64,000 nucleotides of DNA from Mytilus trossulus (lineage: Eukaryota), in NCBI RefSeq assembly GCF_036588685.1, contig NC_086385.1, positions 62,643,216 to 62,707,215 on the forward strand, in the 5' to 3' direction. The position numbers and the translations under genes were made by a program. The notes below the pieces were generated by a model. It saw nothing but the letters and a program-made list of their open reading frames with translations, was not told the DNA's origin and made no database searches. Shown here in pieces: positions 13,575 through 28,829 of the stretch; position 1 is the stretch's first letter, and each line of letters starts with the position of its first letter.

Positions 13575-13852
13575 CGTCTCCGAAGGTATCACCAGCCTAG
13601 TAGTCAACACCTCGGTGTTGATATGAATATCAATAAAGTTGTAATTTCTATAAATTTTCTGTTTACAAAACGTTGAATTTTTCGAAAAACTAAGGATATT
13701 CTTATCCCAGGCATATATTGCCTTAGACGTATTTCATTTGGCACAACTTTTTGGATTTTTTGTATCCTCAATGCTCTTCAACTTTGTACTTGTTTGGCTT
13801 TATACATAATTTGATATAAGCGTCACTGATTTGTCTTATGTAGACGAAACGT
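13575..13852 (+). mobile_element. Retrozyme-family repeat, truncated within the hammerhead
   Basis: Same unit as 4210-4550. It ends at cgtcactgatttgtcttatgtagacgaaacg, where the core is mutated. Confidence 0.7.
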
Positions 13853-15729: not shown

Positions 15730-16122
15730 AGTTATAATCCTGGTACCTTTGATAACTATTTACACCACTGGGTCAATGAGACTGCTGGTGGACGTTCCGT
15801 CTGAAGGGGTATCACCAGCCCAGTAGTCAACACCTCGGTGTTGACATGAATATCAATAATGTGGTATTTTTTTTTTTTATAAATTTCCTGTTTATAAAAC
15901 TTTGAATTTTTCGAAAAAATAAGGATATTCTTATCCCAGGTATAGATTACCTTAGACGTATTTTGCACAACTTTTTGGATTTCTGGATCATCAATGCTTT
16001 TCATCTTTGTACTTGATTGGCTTTATAAATACCTTGTTTTTTCAACCGTCACTGATGAGTCGTATGTAGATGAAGCGCGCTTCTGGCGTACTAAATTATT
16101 ATCCAGGTACCTTTGATAACTA
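15730..16122 (+). mobile_element. Retrozyme-family repeat, one full unit with mutated hammerhead
   Basis: Direct terminal redundancy atcc[t/a]ggtacctttgataacta. Core ctgatgagtcgtatgtagatgaagcgcgc carries GAAA>GAAG. Confidence 0.75.
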
Positions 16123-16780
16123 TAAATACCAAAACATATGACTGAGCTCAAATTTAAAAAAAACCCGCAAGACTAACAAAGGCAAGAGGCTCCTGACTTG
16201 CGACAAACGCAAAAAATGCGGCGGGGTTAAACATGTTTTGTGAGATCTCAACCCTCTCCTATACCTCTAATCAATGCAGAATAATGATACATATAGCAAT
16301 ATGCCTAAGGGTACGGTGAGGAAATCCACGGACCACTACAGATTGCCACGAATGTCGCCGCATCGTATCCGTATCTAATCCGACGTCAATCCGCAAATGT
16401 TTGACCTAATGCATCAGCAACTATTCATCAAAGCAGTATACTATTCAAGTTTCCTACTTCCTGTTTCCAGACCTCATTTTGTTTTCGTACATACATTCAT
16501 ACATGAAGTGTTTGTGGCAGAAATCTAATAGTAAGTAACAAGCTTCATAGATGTTGTACCTGTCAGTTCATTTTGTTTTCGTACATACATGAAGTGTGTG
16601 TGGCAGAAATCTAACTGAACAAAGTAAAATAACAAAAATATTCCAAACTCAAAGTGAAAATAAAAAAATCGTTTATAAAATTAAAAGCACAAACAAATGA
16701 TATCGGTTTAATTTGGTCTCTTCTGGATAGTTATCTCATTGGCATACCACATCTCCCTATTTTTATATTTTTTTTTATAT

Positions 16781-17499
16781 TATTCTGCCTCAGTGCATAC
16801 TAGTATAACCATAAGCCACAGTAATGTATATCATTTATTTCGAAAACCATGAAATAACAAGTTCTACATATGTGTGCTGTGATGTTGGTAAAAAGATTGT
16901 GAGTTGGCGTAGTTAACGATACTTTTAAATGCCTGTGACCACGTTCATGCTTTCAATTTAGGAAACAAAAAAGTAAGGGGGACAGTAACGAACTTCAAAG
17001 TACAAAAATATAGCAATAAAAAATAGTCCGGGAAAACTTTCGAAAAAATAAGGATATTCTTATCCCAGGTATAGATTACCTTAGACGTATTTTGCACAAC
17101 TTTTTGGATTTTTGGATCATCAATGCTTTTCATCTTTGTACTTGATTGGCTTTATAAATACCTTGTTTTTTCAACCGTCACTGATGAGTCGTATGTAGAT
17201 GAAGCGCGCTTCTGGCGTACTAAATTATAATCCAGGTACCTTTGATAACCATGAAATAACAAGTTCTACATATGTGTGCTGTGATGTTGGTAAAAAGATT
17301 GTGAGTTGGCGTAGTTTACGATACTTTTAAATGCCTGTGACCACGTTCATGCTTTCAATTTAGGAAACAAAAAAGTAAGGGGGACAGTAACGAACTTCAA
17401 AGTACAAAAATATAGCAATAAAAAATAGTCCGGGAAAACTTATGAAAAATCGATAGAATTTCTGTTAAACAATAAAAAATCAACACTGGTAACAGTACA
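16781..17499 (-). repeat. 3' LTR, expanded by partial duplication and a captured 211-bp host repeat
   Basis: LTR part (16781-17038) + copy of 15910-16120 (17039-17249) + LTR part (~17247-17499). Confidence 0.9.
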
Positions 17500-17705
17500 C
17501 TCCCCGTCTATTATCATTCCCATGATAATATTTTACAACAAATTTATGCAAATATACCAAATGTAAAAATAAGTCACAATTTTGACTATTACGAAAAATC
17601 AATGCTATCGAAGAACATTCCTTCAGCATAAAAAACACACTAAAAATACAAACAACAGTTCACTGAAACCATTTATAAATTGTTCAATATTGTCAATATT
17701 CACGA

Positions 17706-20700
17706 TCAGTCTACCAATAAAACCATCTCACTAATCGGTCTAGTATATGTAACAGCTTTTCCTTCCTTGTAAATGCGGAGGCGAGCCTTGCGTACTTTTC
17801 CATCATCACTTTTGAAAACTTCCTCCACAATGCCTAGTGGCCACTCTCCTCGGTAAATAGATTTGTCTCTCATAAGAATTATATCACCAACTTTGATATC
17901 GTCTTTGTCAACGTGCCATTTACGTCTCTGTTGCAAACATTGTAAATAATCTGACCTCCAATGCTTCCAGAATATATCTGATAGAACTTGCACATGTTTC
18001 CATTGTGCACGATACATATCCTTGAGATTGTATGTGTCCGTTATCACAGGTAAGTAGTCTTGTTTTCCAGTTAAGAGCATTGATGGGCTTAGAATCAAAG
18101 GCATTTCTGGATCTGATGATATCTGTGCAATGGGTCTTGCGTTAATAATAGCGGTCACTTCAGCTAAGAATGTTGTTAAACTTTCATGAGTCAAACTTTT
18201 ACTACTAGAAGTTAAGATAACAGCGTCTAATATTCTTCGTGTGACACCTATCATCCTTTCCCACACTCCTCCCATGTGGGAAGAGTGGGGAGGGTTAAAT
18301 TTTCATACTGAACCAGATTCACATAGAAAGTTTTTAACTGTCAAATCTTCAACATTTATAGCTTCAATATTTGAATCATCTGTGGCACCTATGAAATTTG
18401 TCCCACGGTCAGATCGATACACTTTGGCTTGTCCGCGTAATGACTGGAACCTACGAAGTGAATTTATAAAACAGGAACTGCTTAATGATTCTATCACTTC
18501 TATATAAACTGCTCTCGTAGTCATACATGTAAATAAAATAGCCCACCTTTTACTTTTTGCTGAACCTCCACGTGTCTTACGAGTTAATACTTGCCAAGGT
18601 CCGAAGGTATCCAAACCTACAAATGTGAACGGAGGCCCTGGTGTTAGTCTATCAGAAGGCAAGTCCGCCATTTTTTGTTCCTGGAACTTTCCTCGAAGTT
18701 TCCTGCATATTACACACTTTTGTATAAATGAAGAAATTAATCGTTTAGCTCCAATTAGCCAGTATCCTGCACTCCTTAACGCACCTTCAGTTAAATGTCT
18801 ACCCTGATGTTTCACTGAATTGTGATAGCGGTCTATAAGAAGCTTACTAATGTAACTATTTTTCGGAATGATAATTGGGTTAATTTCTCCTGTCGGAAGC
18901 CAAGACTTTGCCTTTTCCAAACGTCATCCTACACGAATCAAACCTTGTGAATCCAAAAATGGCGAAAGAGAGATTAAAGATGATTGTTTTGAAATGTTTG
19001 TGCCTCTAGCCAAACATTCTATCTCTTGCGAATATACTTCCTTCTGACATTCCTTCAAGATAAATAATTCCGCTTTTTGGTAACTATCAACTGACATGAC
19101 ATTTTGACAAAAATGCCAACCTTGGCACGACTTATCCTTTAAACTGAATGACTGAGCCACATGTTGCAAAAATGATATAGCTTTCACAAGCCGTCTCCAA
19201 CTAGAGAATTTTTCAAAACGCCCCACTATTGGCGCAAGCGCATCTATTGACGTTTTCGATGCACTTATCTCTTTTCTAATCTCTTTATCATTATCTGGAC
19301 TAACTAACGGATATAATATTTTGACATCACATTGAGCTTCTTCGTCAGAGTTCTTCATCCACTTCGGCCGAAGAAGCCATGGATTGTTTTCCATATCAAC
19401 AGATATTGAGTAACGTGTACCGCAATCTGATGGGTTTAAATGTGTTGGGACAAACTGCCACTGATTTGACGACGATACACTCAGAATGCGTTCAATTCTG
19501 TTTGACACGTAGGTGTGAAAACGTCGGGTCTGATTAGTGATATATCCTAACACAATTTTGCTATCAGAATAATACTTGATAGAGTCCAACGGAACATCTA
19601 AATTTTCAGATATTGTTTTTCCAATTTCGGTTGCCAAGACAGCCCCACATAACTCTAATCTTGGTATCGTGTTTCCGCTAAGAGGTGCTAGTTTCGATTT
19701 TCCCATAATAAATCCGACGGTACTGGTCCCATATGTGTCGATAGCTCTTAAATATGCCGAAGCCGCAACTGCCTTCTCTGAAGCGTCTGAAAATACATGT
19801 ACTTCTAAGTTGTCCATAACACTGATTGACATAGGTATATACATACGCGGTATACTAAGTTCTCGAAGTGACAAAACAGAGATCCTCCATTCATTCCATT
19901 TCTCTTGAAAACTTTGTGATAAAACATTCATCCCAATCAGTACCCGGTGGTGATGCATCTCGCAACAAATTCTTTCCGCTAATTGTGAGTGGTGACAAGA
20001 ATCCAATCGGATCAAAAATACTATTCAATGACGAAAGAATACCTCTACGGGTGCAGGGTTTATCATCTTGTAATGGGGTAAATATAAAGCTATCGGTGTT
20101 TAAGTCCCAAGCGAGGCCAAGGCTGTGTTGTACCGGAAAATAGTCTTCACACAAGTTTAAATTCTTGAGATCCTTTCCAATATCATCGGTAGGGAAAGCC
20201 TTCATTACGTCGCTACTATTTGATGTAATCTTGTGTAACCTAATGTTACCTTCTGTTTTTAGCGCCATCTGTGTTCTTGTTATAAGATCAATTACTTGTT
20301 CACATTCAGGCAAGGAAATGAGCCCATCGTCTACGTAAAAATCCCTGTTAACGAAAGTCTTAACATCTGAGCCGAACGTTTCATTAGAGTTTTCAACTGT
20401 CTTGCGTAATCCGTACGTTGCCACTGCAGGAGAAGCGCTATTGCCAAAAACATTGACACACATCCGATGTTCTATAAGCGGATTATCTGGGTTATTGTCC
20501 TTGTACCAAAAGAACCTCAAAAAGTTTCTATCTTCTTCTCTCACGTAGAATTGATAAAACATTTGTTCTATATCAGCAGTGGCCGCAAACTGGTCACTGC
20601 GAAAACGCAACAAAATACCAAGTAGGTTGTTAGTGAGATCTGGTCCTGACATCATAACGCTATTGAGAGATACTCCTTCGAAAGATGCTGAGGAATCAAA

Positions 20701-23700
20701 TACGCCTCTTATCTGGTTAGGCTTGTTCTGGTGGTAAACAACAAAAAGGGGGAGATACCAACACTCCTCATCTGTGATTATGGGAGCTACCTCCGCTGCT
20801 CCGCTAACTAATACTTTTTGCATAAATTCTACAACATGAGTCTTTTTTGTAAAATTTTGTTGGAAAGATTTATCGAGTATTTGAGCCCTTTTCCATGCTT
20901 GACTCCTATTGTTCGGCAATCGTTGTCTATTGGTTTAAAAGGGAGGGGTGCAGTCCAGTGCCCATTTGAATCTTTCTTAAATTTAGAATCCATGAGATTA
21001 AGGAACAAGCGGTCTTGGACTGATGTGCCAATCTTGTCGTCATCTTTGGTTTTAATAAACAATGGGTCATTGTTACATCTTTGTGAATTAACATTATCTC
21101 TGATATGAGCCAATTCAGTGTTTTCCTTTACATACAAAGTGTTAGTACAAGGTTCAAATATAGTTCCTCTACCATTGTTCATTACATTAGTCATTGTTAT
21201 TGACATTGACAAAATTTGGTTTGTGTACTTTGCCTAAGCAAACAACGCCTATAATTACCCAACCGAAAAAGAGCTCCTGGGCAAATGGCGTGCCCTTCGG
21301 TCCTGTCAACTGTCTAAACACGTGGTGCGCTTCTGGGACATCTCTTCCAATCAAAAGTTGAATGTCTATATTTGGATTCAAATCTAACATTTGATGAGCT
21401 ATCTCCCGTAAATGGGGATAGGATTTAGCAATATCCGGAGTCGGAATTTCTGATTTTTTGTCTGGGATTGCACTGCACTCTATTACTGAATGTATTTCAA
21501 GTTCTCCATTACCAGACAATGACTCAACTATCAGACTTTCTGCACATCTACCATTCATGATAGTGCGTCCAGCACAAGACGACATAGTATACTGAATGGC
21601 CGATGTATTTATACCTAATTGATCAAACAGCTCAGTCTTAGCAAGAGTTCTGTTACTTTGGTCGTCTAGTATAGCGTACACATTAACGGCTTTATCTGGG
21701 AAGTTCTTCGGGTACACACGGACCTGAACGGTTTTTCCACATGATTTACCACTAAATCCACATAAAAACGTGCACTTGGATGACACTGTTTGATCATTAG
21801 CATTTTGCGTTGTATCAGATGATTTCTCTCCGCCGTCAGGACAACTAGATTTTGCAGTTACATGCATAGCGGTTATATGATAATTACTTCCACAATGATC
21901 GCATTTTACAGTTACAGTGCAATTTCGTGACATATGAGTTGTCGAATGGCAGCATTTGAAACAAATATTATTGTCCTTCAGATACTTTCTGCGTTCTTCA
22001 TAAGTCATTGCTTTAAAGGCTCGACAAGTATTCAAATGATGATTGGCTTTATGAATAGGACAACGTACTGTCTCTTTCTCTTCCTTCTGTTTAATATTAA
22101 CATCTGTTTTTCGGTTAAACACTGACGTTGCACCATGGTTAACTTTCCGTGTTTCATTTTTCCTAGAATACGACGTTTCAGTATTACTATAAATAAACGC
22201 GGGATCATTTTTGACAGCACTAACCTCTCTGATAAATTGCACCAAGTACGAAAAAGGTGGAAATGGTACGTTGTTCCTCAGTTTGTATTGCGATGCACGT
22301 GTTGTCCACTTCTCTTGTATATTATATGGTAACTTGTCCACAATTGGTAAAACACCAGAAGAAGAGTCGAAATATGACAATAAATTTGAAAATGTCTCAT
22401 TCTCTTTCGAAGATTCTATTTGTGTGAGAATATCTAATAGCTCATAAAGTCGACTATGATCCTTGTTTGTTAACTTTGGAAACTTCTGTAGTTTTGTTTT
22501 AATTGCAGCTTCTACCATCTCAGGTCTACCATAGCGTTCGTCAAGACGCTCCCATATACGACGAAGACCAGCATTTGGATCGTTCACATTTGACGCACGA
22601 ATATTTTGCGAAAACTTTGAAGATTCACGGCCGAGCCATTTAACAAATAAGTCCATTTCTTCGAAAGCCGTAACTGAGAGTTCTTCAGTAATACTTTTAA
22701 AGGTAGCTTTCCATGAAGCATAAGTTTCGGGACAGTCATCGAAATTCTGAAATCTAGAAAGTAATAAATCTTTCTTCAACAAAAACTTTGTCAAGTCAGA
22801 CACTACAGACTGATCATGATTTGGTGGCAGTGGTGGTTGAGTTAATTCAAAATCAGCTGCATAAGGATTTAATGTTTGTTTTTGCCGAATTTCTGGTTTG
22901 ATATCTTCAACAGTCGATCGATCCAAATCGTCGACTTGAAATTTTGGCAAATTCCTTGGCGTAGGAATTATGTTTAACTGGTTCCAAGGTGCCGGAGTAT
23001 GTGAACTAAATTTGTCTTGATTGTTCGAAATATCTTGCGGAACATTATTATTCTTGTCTTGTTGTTCCACTTCATTAAATTGTTCATTTACATACTTTTA
23101 TGTTAGTGTCATTTTCACTTTTTGTAAAGACTCTTTGTCTTCTCGTAACGACAAGGATCTTCTATCGCTCTCGGCTTCTTCTAAAACTTTGACCTCGACC
23201 TCTGCGACAGCGGCTTCTGTCTGTTGTTTAAGCAGTGCTAAATCTGCATCAACTTCAGCTTTTTCACGGTCCTTTAAAGCTTTAGACTGTGTTTCTAATT
23301 CACTTAATCTTGCCTTTTGCTTCATTAATTTTGTTTGTTGTTCCGCATATTGTAACTTTGTTCGTTGAACTTCAGCATTTACACGCTTCCTAGCCATAGC
23401 TGAACTCGAAATTGAGCCGCTTTTACCACTATTGTTTGAACGGACAGACTCTACAGGAACTACTGACATAGTTTCAGCTGCGGTTAATTTCAATGTCTTA
23501 ATTTGTTGTAATGTATTGTCAATGATTTCAGTGCACTTTTTAAACTCAGTCTTGAAGGTGGGTAATGCTTCATTACTGTCTTCATTATTCTTGCGTGTCA
23601 AAAACTCAATATATTGATTTGAGTTTTCACAGTATTTTTCACAAGACTTCAAAATGTTTTTCTCTAGTTTGCGTAGAGGTTTCAGCTCCTTCGAGCACTC

Positions 23701-23857
23701 TGAGAATTCTTCGAGTAAATTTTCTAGTTTCCCACGAACCGTAAATTTGTTTAAGGTATTTTATCTTATGTGAATGATAAAGTTCTTTACCTTTCTCTGT
23801 CATTTTATGTTCATGTGTTACTGTTGTTTCAGGCGGAAGTGGTTGTGATTGAGCCAT
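17706..23857 (-). pseudogene. BEL/Pao gag-pol polyprotein with about 3 in-frame stops and about 4 frameshifts
   Basis: Triple zinc knuckles (CPIH..HHLNTC, CFKCC..H..C, CDHC..H..H), protease AILDDQS, RT FYVDD, RNase H HVFSDAS, integrase HHCC, GLDTFGP, SDRGTNF and GGVWER, spread over eight ORF pieces. Confidence 0.93.
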
Positions 23858-23915
23858 TTCATAAAATTGTTTGTAGGAACTACTGCATGTTATTCTGTAT
23901 CGAACTGTGTCTTTG

Positions 23916-23927
23916 CAATCTTTTTAC
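23916..23927 (-). promoter_or_regulatory. Non-tRNA primer-binding site, complementary to LTR 24035-24046 (putative self-priming)
   Basis: Sense GTAAAAAGATTG lies immediately after the 5' LTR and is the perfect reverse complement of sense CAATCTTTTTAC inside the LTR. Confidence 0.7.
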
Positions 23928-24244
23928 TATTCTGCCTCAGTGCATACTAGTATAACCATAAGCCACAGTAATGTATATCATTTATTTCGAAAACCATGAA
24001 ATAACAAGTTCTACATATGTGTGCTGTGATGTTGGTAAAAAGATTGTGAGTTGGCGTAGTTTACGATACTTTTAAATGCCTGTGACCACGTTCATGCTTT
24101 CAATTTAGGAAACAAAAAGGTAAGGGGGACAGTAACGAACTTCAAAGTACAAAAATCTAGCAATAAAAAATAGTCCGGGAAAACTTATGAAAAGTCGATA
24201 GAATTTCTGTTAAACAATAAAAAATCAACACTGGTAACAGTACA
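23928..24244 (-). repeat. 5' LTR (317 bp, TG...TA)
   Basis: About 99% identical to the 3' LTR segments. The sense strand has a TATA-like TTTAAAAG (~24076-24069), an Inr-like TCA (24049-24047) and AATAAA (23986-23981). Confidence 0.92.
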
Positions 24245-25026
24245 TATATTTTGTAAACTAGTTGCGATTATTTTGACAGAATGATGAGTTTGAAACCTGT
24301 AAATCTTCCGCAGTTGATATGTACATGTATACATATGCAAACATAATTAATTGAGTTGTGCATTGTTTTTGTTATTACATTTTTTGTAACTAAAGATCGA
24401 CAATACGGATGTCAAACACATCAATCCGATTAAATACAGATCCTCTGTGAAATACGTTTCGTTCTACGGTTTGTTGTAAAGTCCTGTCGGTATCCTCTAG
24501 TTTTGTCGGATTAATACACACCTGTAAAAATTTGAAGGCTAACATTGCATTGGCTGGTGTGATAATTACCAGAACAGAAAATAAAACGCAGTGTTTCAGA
24601 TCCTCGTAAGCAAAGCTTGCGCCACATTATTTATGTATGAGCCTGTCCCAAGTCAGGAGCCTGTAATTTAGTGGTTGTCGTTTGTTTATGTGTTACATAT
24701 TTGTTTTTCGTTCATTTTTTTTTCATAAATAAGGCCGTTAGTTTTCTCGTTAAAATTGTTTTACATTGTCTTATCGGGGCCTTTTATAGCTGACTATGCG
24801 GTATAGGCTTTGCTCATTGTTAAAGGTCGTACGGTGACCTTTAGTTGTTAATGTTTGTCATTTGGATCTTTTGTGAATAGTTGTCTCATTGGTAATCATG
24901 CCACATCTTCTTTTTTATAATTAAACTGTAAATGAGTCTGTATTTTAATCAGTTTGAAAATATATCCTCATCAATTCAAGAGAAGAGGGACGAAAGATAC
25001 CAAAGGGACAGTCAAACTCATTACAT

Positions 25027-28000
25027 ATGCGTATTCAACTGGTGCCGGATTACAAGTTATTTCAATTACAAATATTTTATAGTGTTGTATCTCCACATTT
25101 CCATTGGCGTATTCAAATGGTGCTGGATTACAAGTTAGTTCAATTAGAAATATTTTATAGTGTTGTATCTCCACATTTCCATTGGCGTATTCAAATGGTG
25201 CTGGATTACAAGTTAGTTCAATTACAAATATTTTATAGTGGTGTATCTACACATTTCCATTGGTGTATTCAACTGGTGCCGGATTACAAGTTAGTTCAGA
25301 TACAAATATTTTATAGAGTTGTATCTCCACATTTACATTGACCAGGCAAAAGCTAGCGAACAATAGCTAGCGAACAATAAGCCAGCGAACAATAAGGCGA
25401 TATATCGAGAAACCAAAAAACAGAATAAGACAACAACGGCCGTTAAATAAAAAAATATTCCAAAAGGCAGAAAATCAGTTAAAATATAGCAATTTTAACT
25501 CAATTTTGAAATGGTTTTCATCCAATCTATTGATTTAACAAGTCGCATAACTTGTTAGGCTACTATTCAGTACCACAATAACTCTGCATCTATCAACGGA
25601 TTATTTGTAGGTGTAGGGCCTCCTATGCACCCTCTTCAATTTAGAACGTATGTAAAAGTAGTCTTACCCTGTAAAATAAAGCACCTTTTATGTCATTGTT
25701 TAATCTAGAGCTCAAAATTTGAAAAAAATGTCAAAAATTAGGGGGGTCGGCCTATTCCAGGGCTTCTAGAGAAAAATAATGAGGGGTGTCACGGGGTACG
25801 ACTATAAAGGTCTTGTAGAGGAGAAACATGCGCTTCTTTTGCGCTAGGTATCGAAGGGCGCTATGTTCAAAAATCTGAAACTAGAGCTCAAAATTTGAAA
25901 AAAATGTCAAAAAATTAGGGGGGTCGGCCTATTCCAGGAGTTCTAGGGGAAAATAATGAGGGGTGTCACGGGGTATGACTATATAGGTCTTGTAGAGGAG
26001 AAACAGGCGCTTCTTTTGCACTAGGTATCGAAGGGCGCTATGTTCAAAAATCTGAAACTAGAGCTCAAAATTTGAAAAAAATGTTCAAAAAATGGGGGTA
26101 GGGTCGGCCTATTCTAGGAGTTCTAGGGAAAAATAATGAGGGGTGTCACGGGGTATGACTATGAAGGTCTTGTAAAAAAGAAACAGGCGCTTCTTTTGCG
26201 CTAGGTATCGAAGGGCGCTATGTTCGAGAATCTGAAACTAGAGCTCAAAATTCGAAAAAAATGTTTAAAAAATGGGGGTAGGGTCGGCCTATTCCAGGAG
26301 TTCTAGAGAAAAATAATATGGGGTGTCACGGGATATGACTATATAGGTCCTGTAGAGGAGAAACAGGCGCTTCTTTTGCGCTAGGTATCGAAGGGTGCTA
26401 TGTTCAAAAATCTGAAACTAGAGCTCAAAATTTGAAAAAAAATGTCCAAAAAATGGGGGTAGGGACCTATATAGTCATACCCCGTGACACCCCTCATTAT
26501 TTTTCTCTAGAAGCCCTGGAATAGGCCGACCCCCCTAATTTTTTGACATTTTTTTCAAAATTTGAGGTCTAGATTAAACAATGATATAAAAGGTGCTATA
26601 TTTTACAGGGTAGGACTACTTTTACATACGTTCTAAATTGAAGAGGGTGCATAGGTGGCCCTACACCTACAGATAATCCGTTGATAGATGCAGAGTTATT
26701 GTGGTACTGAATAGTAGCCTAACAAGTTATGCGACTTGTTAAATCAATAGATTGGATGAAAACCATTTCAAAATTGAGTTAAAATTGCTATAATTTAACT
26801 GATTTTCTGCCTTTTGGAATATTTTTTTATTTAACGGCCGTTGTTGTCTTATTCTGTTTTTTGGTTTCTCGATATATCGTCTTATTGTTCGCTGGCTTAT
26901 TGTTCGCTAGCTATTGTTCGCTAGCTTTTGTCTGGTTTTACATTGGCGTATTCAACTGGTGCTGGATTACAAGTTAGTTCAGATACAAATATTTAATAGT
27001 GGTGTATCTCCACATTTATATTGGCGTATTCACTCGGTGCCGGATTACAAGTTAGTTCAGATACAAATATTTTATAGTGGTGTATCTCCACATTTACATT
27101 GGCGTATTCAACTGGTGCTGGATTACAAGTTAGTTCAGATACAAATATTTTATAGTGGTGTATCTACACATTTCCATTGGTGTATTCACTCGGTGCCGGA
27201 TTACAAGTTAGTTCAGATACAAATATTTTATAGCGTTGTATCTACACATTTCCATTGGTGTATTCATCTGGTGCCGAATTACAAGTTCGTTCAATTACAA
27301 ATGTTTTATAGTGTTGTATCTCCACAATTCCATTGGTGTATCCACTCGGTGCCGGATTACAATGTTTTATAGTGTTGTATCTTCACATTTCCATTGGTTT
27401 ATTCACTCGGTGCCGGATTACAAGTTAGTTCAGATACAAATATTTCATAGTGGTGTATCTCCACATTTACATTGGCGTATTCATCTGGTGCCGAATTACA
27501 AGTTAGTTAAGATACCCATTTTTTATAGTGGTGTATCTCCACATGTCCATTGGCGTATTCAACTTGTGTCGGATTACAAGTTAGTTCAGATACAAATATT
27601 GTATAGTGTTGTATCCCCACATTTCCATTGGTGTATTCACCCAGTGCCGGATTACAAGTTAGTTCAGATACCCATATGTTATTGTGGTGTATCTCCACAT
27701 TTCCATTGACGTATTCAACTGGTGCCGGATTACAAGTTAGTTCAAATACCCATATTTTATAGTGGTGTATCTCCACATTTACATTGGCGTATTCAACTGG
27801 TGCCGGATTACAAGTTAGTTCAGATACAAATATTTTATAGTGTTGAATCTACACATTTACTTTGGCGTATTCAACTGGTGCCGGATTACAAGTTAGTTCA
27901 GATACCCATATTTTATAGTGGTGTATACGTATCTCCACATTTAAATTGGAGTATTCACCCGGTGCCGGATTACAAGTTAGTTCATATACAAATATTTTAT

Positions 28001-28645
28001 ATCGTTGTATCTGCACATTTCCATTGGTGTATTCACCCGGTGCCGGATCACAAGTTAGTTCAGATACAAATATTCTATAGCGTTGTATCTACACATTTCC
28101 ATTGGTGTATTCACTCGGTGCCGGATTACAAGTTAGTTCAGATTCAAATATTTTATAGCGTTGTATCTCCACATTTCCATTGGTGTATTCAACCGGTGCC
28201 GGATTACAAGTTAGTTAGGATACAAATATTTTATGGCGTTGTATCTACACATTTCCATCGGTGTATTCACTCGGTGCCGGATTACAAGTTAGTTCAGATA
28301 CAAATATTTTATAGTGGTGTATCTACACATTTCCATTGGCGTATTCAACCGGTGCCGGATTACAAGTTAGTTCAGATACAAATGTTTTATAGCGTTGTAT
28401 CTCCACATTTCCATTGGTGTTTTCACCCGGTGCCGGATTACAAGTTAGTTCAGATACAAATATTTTCTAGAGTTGTATCTCCACATTTACATTGGCGTAT
28501 TCAAATAGCGCAGGATTACAAGTTAGTTCAGATACAAATATTGTATAGTGTTAAATCTCCACATTTTCATTGGTGTATTCACCTGGTGCCGGATTAAAAG
28601 TTAGTTCAGATACAAATATTTTATAGTGTTGTATTTCCACCATTT
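25027..28645. repeat. 78-bp minisatellite (~26 units), interrupted by a foldback element
   Basis: Unit attggcgtattcaactggtgccggattacaagttagttcagatacaaatattttatagtggtgtatctccacatttcc. It gives the 26-aa periodicity seen in spurious ORFs. Confidence 0.95.
25341..26936. mobile_element. Foldback / MULE-like non-autonomous transposon with internal ~178-bp tandem array
   Basis: ~470-bp TIRs (ACCAGGCAAAAGCTAGCG.. / ..CGCTAGCTTTTGTCTGGT) and a 9-bp TSD TTTACATTG. Internal units start at 25705, 25881, 26058, 26238 and 26418. Confidence 0.92.
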
Positions 28646-28829
28646 CTCGAGTACTTTTGTTGTAAAATAATTGTTATCAAATTGTTCTTAGTAGTACTAT
28701 ATATAAAATGTATAAGTCGAAGCGTTTTTCTAGATTTACCTTCAATAGGGACACGTGAACTAGAAACATTTTGGATTATAGCTCTTCATCTTTTATATAA
28801 GCTTTGGATTTCAAATATTTTGGCCACGA

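Follow-up and report, generated by a model that had tools for sequence, protein, structure and literature searches.

How does a BEL/Pao retrotransposon begin reverse transcription when the sequence that follows its 5′ LTR contains no TGG that could pair with the CCA end of a tRNA? This question is raised by an element on the minus strand of a 64,000-nt stretch of Mytilus trossulus DNA (GCF_036588685.1, NC_086385.1, positions 62,643,216 to 62,707,215; hereafter the window, numbered from its first letter). A first-pass annotation made from the sequence alone had noted that the 12 nt after the LTR are complementary to a segment within the LTR, and had inferred that this BEL lineage self-primes in the manner of Tf1, without a tRNA, from a transcript starting at about 24047. 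In following up this proposal, we found that the element and at least 13 related lineages seem to start reverse transcription with the 5′ end of their own RNA rather than with a host tRNA, and that in most of them the putative 11-13-nt primer is encoded in two pieces separated by a spliceosomal intron inside the LTR.

Complementarity between the LTR and the adjacent sequence

The element spans 24244-16781. Pfam searches of its ORFs identified DUF1759, Peptidase_A17, integrase H2C2 and DUF5641, as expected for BEL/Pao, while the reading frame is broken into at least seven pieces, indicating a degenerate copy. Its features, all on the minus strand, are as follows.

24245-24249, minus strand: 5′ target-site duplication (TSD) ATATA.
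23928-24244, minus strand: 5′ LTR, 317 nt, TGTACTG...GGCAGAATA, intron-less form.
24069-24076, minus strand: TATA-like TTTAAAAG, about 30 nt upstream of the primer segment, with a function inferred only.
24035-24046, minus strand: putative self-primer CAATCTTTTTAC, an exon-exon junction (CAAT|CTTTTTAC, between 24043 and 24042) preceded by an Inr-like TCA (A at 24047).
23981-23986, minus strand: AATAAA polyadenylation signal in the LTR.
23916-23927, minus strand: predicted primer-binding site (PBS) GTAAAAAGATTG, the first 12 nt after the LTR.
17500-23915, minus strand: internal region with leader, gag start ATG at 23857, degenerate gag-pol, and polypurine tract (PPT) AGACGGGGAG at 17509-17500.
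16781-17499, minus strand: rearranged 3′ LTR, comprising LTR positions 1-253 (17499-17247), a ~200-nt unrelated local repeat (17246-17047), and LTR positions 52-317 (17046-16781); both LTR pieces are intron-less and carry the 12-mer (17301-17290 and 16899-16888).
16776-16780, minus strand: 3′ target-site duplication ATATA.

The two pieces of the 3′ LTR overlap by ~200 nt. Near-identical copies of the sequence between them, which is probably a short interspersed repeat, lie at 15909-16126 (98%) and partly at 13645-13734. No stretch read as N or looked human. Just upstream of the element (24915-28758 and 25744-26460) are arrays of a 78-nt tandem repeat (25 or more copies in three blocks) and four copies of a 180-nt repeat.

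The observation made in the first-pass annotation was confirmed. GTAAAAAGATTG (23927-23916) and CAATCTTTTTAC (24046-24035) are exact reverse complements, and because the flanking bases do not pair the duplex is exactly 12 bp. The LTR boundary was established by alignment with the 3′ LTR, by the flanking 5-bp TSD, and by perfect 5-bp TSDs at the same LTR termini in four other insertions of the family (ACAAC, TTAAA, ATTTC and CCGAT). The pairing therefore starts at offset 0 from the LTR end. No TGG is present, and the TATA-like motif, the TCA and the AATAAA are located where the annotation had placed them. The composition-based expectation for an exact 12-mer complement anywhere in the LTR is 1.3e-4, and in 20,000 dinucleotide shuffles with offsets of 0-3 allowed, 6e-4 reached 12 nt; on these figures, together with the covariation and the scan controls described below, chance was rejected as an explanation. 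Both the minimum-free-energy and the centroid predicted folds of 24047-23900 contain the duplex, and no Rfam family matched the region.

A GT-AG segment within the complementary sequence of sister LTRs

A search of the whole genome with the LTR revealed a feature that had been missed. Every close relative splits the query exactly between 24043 and 24042. These relatives are two full copies on contigs that we designate C3 and C6, a third copy on C9, and solo LTRs on C8, C5 and C6, amounting to eight sister LTRs in six or more insertions. They carry 283 extra bases between ...CTCACAAT and CTTTTTACC..., beginning with GTAAGT and ending in a long T-rich tract followed by TAG (TTGTAG). The PBS is identical in the C3 and C6 copies. 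The sister copies are very young, with LTR pairs matching at 599/600 and 596/600 positions, and have long open frames. The 5′ LTR of the window copy aligned to the 600-nt 5′ LTR of the C3 copy with 315 matches, 2 mismatches and a single 283-nt gap (99.4% identity apart from the gap), whose boundaries are unambiguous, as no shared bases at the two ends would allow the gap to slide. All three LTR pieces of the window copy lack the segment. This is the signature of reverse transcription of an RNA from which a spliceosomal intron had been removed, and the window copy is therefore a retrocopy of a spliced RNA from an intron-bearing family. The 12-mer is an exon-exon junction, and in the unspliced LTR only 8 nt (CTTTTTAC) are contiguous.

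We considered whether the segment could be an ordinary insertion. This was rejected, as it has no TSD, its ends are GT...AG with full consensus, its position is the same in 10 other lineages (see below), and it occurs nowhere else in the genome outside LTRs. Intron-less forms arose or persisted more than once, since an older, 5′-truncated copy with internal insertions on contig C2 (24060939-24072000), 77% identical, has an intron-less 3′ LTR that still keeps CAATCTTTTTAC. A related copy on C5 has a degenerate upstream region. Other BEL families of this genome, which share 49% amino acid identity or less, are not included in the comparisons reported here.

Covariation in related lineages

To assess whether the complementarity is maintained in relatives, a test that the first-pass annotation had itself named, we searched a protein library with the intact gag N-terminus of a sister copy, aligned the full-length gag relatives, and scanned metagenome contigs with this alignment, which gave 44 loci. 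A scan of viral contigs found nothing. Where LTR pairs, or a PPT with an LTR start, could be defined, the same architecture recurred. In 13 related lineages (31-56% gag identity; the three that were checked by Pfam are BEL/Pao), the LTR ends ...CA or ...TA, and the next bases, at offset 0, pair over 11-13 nt with a segment of the element's own LTR. In 10 of these the pairing spans a GT-AG intron, in one it is contiguous, and in one the intron-like sequence is retained next to a contiguous primer. Introns are 101-696 nt long. The primer segment ends ...AC and the PBS starts GT in 14 of 14 lineages, including the window family. Examples are given below, with each locus label denoting one metagenome lineage.

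L073: exon-1 end AATGGA, exon-2 start ATCTAAC, PBS GTTAGATTCCATT.
L075: exon-1 end ATCGTC, exon-2 start TTTTTAC, PBS GTAAAAAGACGAT.
L093: exon-1 end AATGACT, exon-2 start TTTTAC, PBS GTGAAAAGTCATT, with one G.U pair.
L083: exon-1 end ATGGTT, exon-2 start TTTTAC, PBS GTAAAAAACCAT.
L089: exon-1 end ATGGCT, exon-2 start TTTCAC, PBS GTGAAAAGCCAT.
L077: contiguous GGATTTTTTAC, PBS GTAAAAAATCC, no intron.

GT...AG ends with an extended donor consensus and a pyrimidine tract, as seen in the window family, were also found in L073, L075, L076 (3′ site only), L079 (weaker donor), L093 and six more lineages. In the eight relatives whose gag ORF opens just downstream of the PBS, the PBS lies 23-41 nt upstream of the gag ATG.

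All 14 exon-1 parts differ in sequence and each is matched by its own PBS. Own pairs average 12.07 bp whereas cross pairs average 5.05 bp, and 0 of 100,000 permutations reached the observed total. Close relatives differ by single compensated changes, for example ATGGTT/AACCAT against ATGGCT/AGCCAT. The relatives were partly found with a scan that itself required complementarity and splice consensus, and their number is therefore not an unbiased frequency; about 12 of roughly 26 assessable contigs, mostly the most distant (23-29% identity) or degraded ones, showed nothing. When the same scan was applied to control sequences, 9 forward-strand hits carried the A|GT signature, compared with 0 on the reverse complement and 0 on reversed sequence. 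One control hit, an antisense GT-AG-spliced 12-nt complement (GGAAGCGG|TTCTCTG with CAGAGGACCGCT) shared by four related distant contigs (L109-L112), is probably chance inherited within one family.

This covariation, always anchored at the LTR boundary, supports Tf1-like self-priming and argues against a tRNA primer. Alternatively, the complementarity may be a structural RNA element involved in cyclisation, dimerisation or packaging, as with Ty1 CYC5/CYC3 or retroviral U5-leader stems, while an unidentified primer such as a tRNA fragment starts reverse transcription. Long-range pairings near the PBS occur in other retroelements, and no priming biochemistry is known for this clade. However, a purely structural pairing would not have to begin exactly at the LTR boundary, as it does in all 14 lineages, whereas a primer would, because its 3′ end must sit at this point. 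Furthermore, the 11-13 nt after the LTR differ between lineages, so no shared host RNA can pair there. A search of the genome with the Rfam tRNA model returned only one tandem array, on contig C10 (51257126-51302119), of at least 60 tRNA genes, which by ARAGORN alternate between tRNA-Lys(UUU) and tRNA-Met in blocks of both orientations with roughly 1.5-kb periodicity. Among these sampled tRNAs, the only two host types compared, no complement of 6 nt or more to the leader was found. A T5 run could not be used to exclude a nuclear tRNA, because tRNA-Lys(UUU) itself contains TTTT. An initial count of about 95,000 tRNA-like candidates in the genome suggests abundant tRNA-derived SINEs. We consider the structural alternative improbable.

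Inferred transcription start and splicing of the 5′ copy

Three raw RNA-seq runs and one contig set were compared with the intron-bearing C3 copy. Only a handful of reads fell on gag, with none on the LTR and no splice joints, which is too few to speak for or against the proposed start or splicing; the contig set contained the intron-bearing LTR as a collapsed LTR-plus-internal contig. The hints as to the start are therefore indirect. A CA dinucleotide, consistent with an initiator, lies 0-2 nt upstream of the complement in 12 of 14 lineages, and TATA-like motifs lie about 25-30 nt upstream in several lineages, including TTTAAAAG here. Two rearranged LTRs give a further hint, as in both the intron-like sequence is kept but its last 4-5 nt are replaced by the exon-1 nucleotides, so that the primer is contiguous behind an unspliceable "intron". 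On contig C40 of this genome (3308617-3308980), an intron-like sequence (88% identical) runs directly into CAAT-CTTTTTAC, with CAAT in place of the last four intron bases GTAG. In L085 (435-870), the upstream TCTCG|GTATGT is kept and the intron-like sequence ends in TCTCG-TTTCAC. These LTRs may be fossils of a strong-stop DNA copied to the very 5′ end of a spliced RNA, then transferred onto an unspliced 3′ R and extended from a mismatched end. If so, the RNA would begin at the first base of the complement and exon 1 would be only 4-7 nt; we regard this as a lead rather than a result.

In intron-bearing copies, a start at the complement implies a capped first exon of only 4-8 nt, which is unusually short for spliceosomal recognition, although very short 5′ splice-site RNAs can take part in both steps of splicing in extracts. 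The difficulty would be removed if the TSS were located well upstream in the LTR, giving a first exon of ordinary length, with the spliced leader pairing with the PBS from an internal position and being cut to give a longer self-primer. In favor of this possibility, several lineages lack a clear TATA at -30. However, the complement stops exactly where the conserved CA sits, only the 4-5 exon-1 nt belonging to the complement are duplicated next to exon 2 in the C40 and L085 LTRs, as expected if the RNA begins there, and a longer primer would give plus-strand strong-stop DNA a non-matching 3′ tail. We consider this possibility unlikely.

Self-priming could also occur without splicing of the 5′ copy. 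In this case the 4-7-nt 5′ end and the exon-2 start would pair side by side on the PBS in a three-way junction with the intron looped out, the cut after ...AC would give a long primer, and the GT-AG signals would serve only occasional splicing, for example of the 3′ copy. The covariation of both halves fits this model equally well, it avoids splicing of a 4-8-nt first exon, and the intron-less window copy would need splicing of only one LTR copy. However, four lineages (the window family, L073, L076 and L093) were identified without any splice-site requirement, by reading from the two halves of the PBS complement, and in all four the exon-2 half is preceded by a pyrimidine tract plus AG, while in the three where exon 1 is on the contig it is followed by GTAAGT. 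This is unexpected if splicing were irrelevant. A roughly 300-nt primer would also make plus-strand strong-stop DNA run on into intron sequence, leaving a 3′ end that does not match the PBS. This alternative appears unlikely, although it is the strongest of the three.

A model for priming by a split self-primer

Taken together, the interpretation in the first-pass annotation was partly supported. Its core inference of self-priming without a tRNA is well supported by comparative evidence, but the contiguous 12-mer is not the normal state of the family, the start at about 24047 has only indirect support, and cleavage and priming remain inferences. The explanation that we consider likely is that the element belongs to a BEL/Pao clade that primes minus-strand DNA synthesis with the 5′ end of its own RNA, as Tf1 does. 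Transcription would start at or 1-2 nt before the complementary segment, the first 11-13 nt of the mature RNA would fold back onto the sequence immediately 3′ of U5, RNase H would cut after the invariant ...AC, and the freed 3′-OH would be extended into U5, which is what would set the LTR boundary. In retroelements the plus-strand PBS is copied from the primer, which would keep the two sequences complementary automatically. In most members the primer would be encoded as a 4-7-nt first-exon end and a 6-8-nt second-exon start, separated by a 100-700-nt spliceosomal intron, and the contiguous primer would exist only after splicing of the cap-proximal copy. With such a cut, everything in the LTR upstream of it, including the intron, would be copied into progeny from the 3′ LTR copy of the RNA, as U3 is. 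The intron would then be inherited when the 3′ copy stays unspliced and lost when it is spliced, as in the window copy, and this would be why a contiguous 12-mer was seen there. Strong splice signals in the 3′ copy should favor frequent intron loss, yet intron-bearing LTRs predominate, and the model does not by itself explain how the 3′ copy stays unspliced. Our data demonstrate the complementarity, its anchoring at the LTR end, its covariation across lineages, the GT-AG segment and the precise absence of this segment from the window copy, whereas the TSS, splicing of the 5′ copy, cleavage, priming itself and the inheritance route, which follows from the standard strand-transfer scheme, are inferred.

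A further reading, which is possible but which we put forward only tentatively, is that this clade depends on the host spliceosome to assemble its reverse-transcription primer. A 4-8-nt capped first exon would be joined to exon 2 to form the self-primer, and because the cut lies downstream of the junction, the LTR intron would never be copied from the 5′ end and would be re-inherited from the unspliced 3′ LTR copy, letting a retroelement carry a 5′ leader intron without losing it on retrotransposition.

Comparison with described retroelements

Tf1 and Tf2 of Schizosaccharomyces pombe and the Tf1/sushi group also lack a tRNA-type PBS, and the sequence immediately 3′ of their 5′ LTR is complementary to about 11 nt at the inferred start of R, with the complementarity kept in relatives with different sequences. 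Self-priming is described or predicted for Tf1/sushi and Tcn1. However, these are Ty3/gypsy chromoviruses, whereas Pfam gave only BEL/Pao domains here, so that the element is proposed to work like Tf1 but is not a member of that clade; in addition, the primer is split by an intron in most members of the present clade, and RNase H cleavage and the TSS, reportedly demonstrated for Tf1 by Levin and co-workers, are only inferred here. Self-priming has also been predicted from sequence in the plant Ty1/copia lineages TAR, Houba and Osr-1, which belong to a different superfamily and for which no intron in the primer is reported. The element shares with Belpaoviridae as described by ICTV (Semotivirus; BEL, Pao, Tas, Cer, Sinbad and others) the gag-pol organization, Peptidase_A17 and DUF5641 domains, TGT...ACA-type LTR ends, a 5-bp TSD and a PPT ending GGGGAG. 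The ICTV profile describes the family as tRNA-primed, with an 18-nt PBS complementary to tRNA-Arg or tRNA-Gly; this clade has neither, judging from the absence of TGG here and from a PBS that differs between lineages and matches each element's own LTR, with only tRNA-Lys(UUU) and tRNA-Met of the host compared directly. Retroviruses with the major splice donor in R, such as deltaretroviruses and spumaviruses, and intron-bearing retroelements such as Ogre also carry spliceosomal signals within the LTR or the genomic RNA, but there the acceptor lies far downstream, for subgenomic mRNAs, or the intron is in coding sequence, while here both splice sites are inside the LTR and the exon junction forms the sequence that pairs with the PBS.

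The metazoan BEL/Pao survey and the Sinbad paper do not mention PBS, tRNA, primer or introns. Full-text searches combining BEL, Pao and self-priming returned only papers that mention them separately, and searches for self-priming together with an LTR intron found nothing relevant, although most subscription journals were outside these searches and an earlier report cannot be excluded. If our interpretation holds, self-priming has been found or predicted in all three LTR-retrotransposon superfamilies, and the official description of Belpaoviridae as tRNA-primed needs qualifying. PBS-based annotation pipelines that search only for tRNA complements would miss or mis-bound this clade. The intron-split primer, which is the more interesting part, would link retroelement replication to splicing and predicts spliceosomal use of an extremely short capped first exon. 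It would also offer a way for a retroelement to keep a leader intron, with the export and expression benefits that introns usually bring, despite replicating through RNA.
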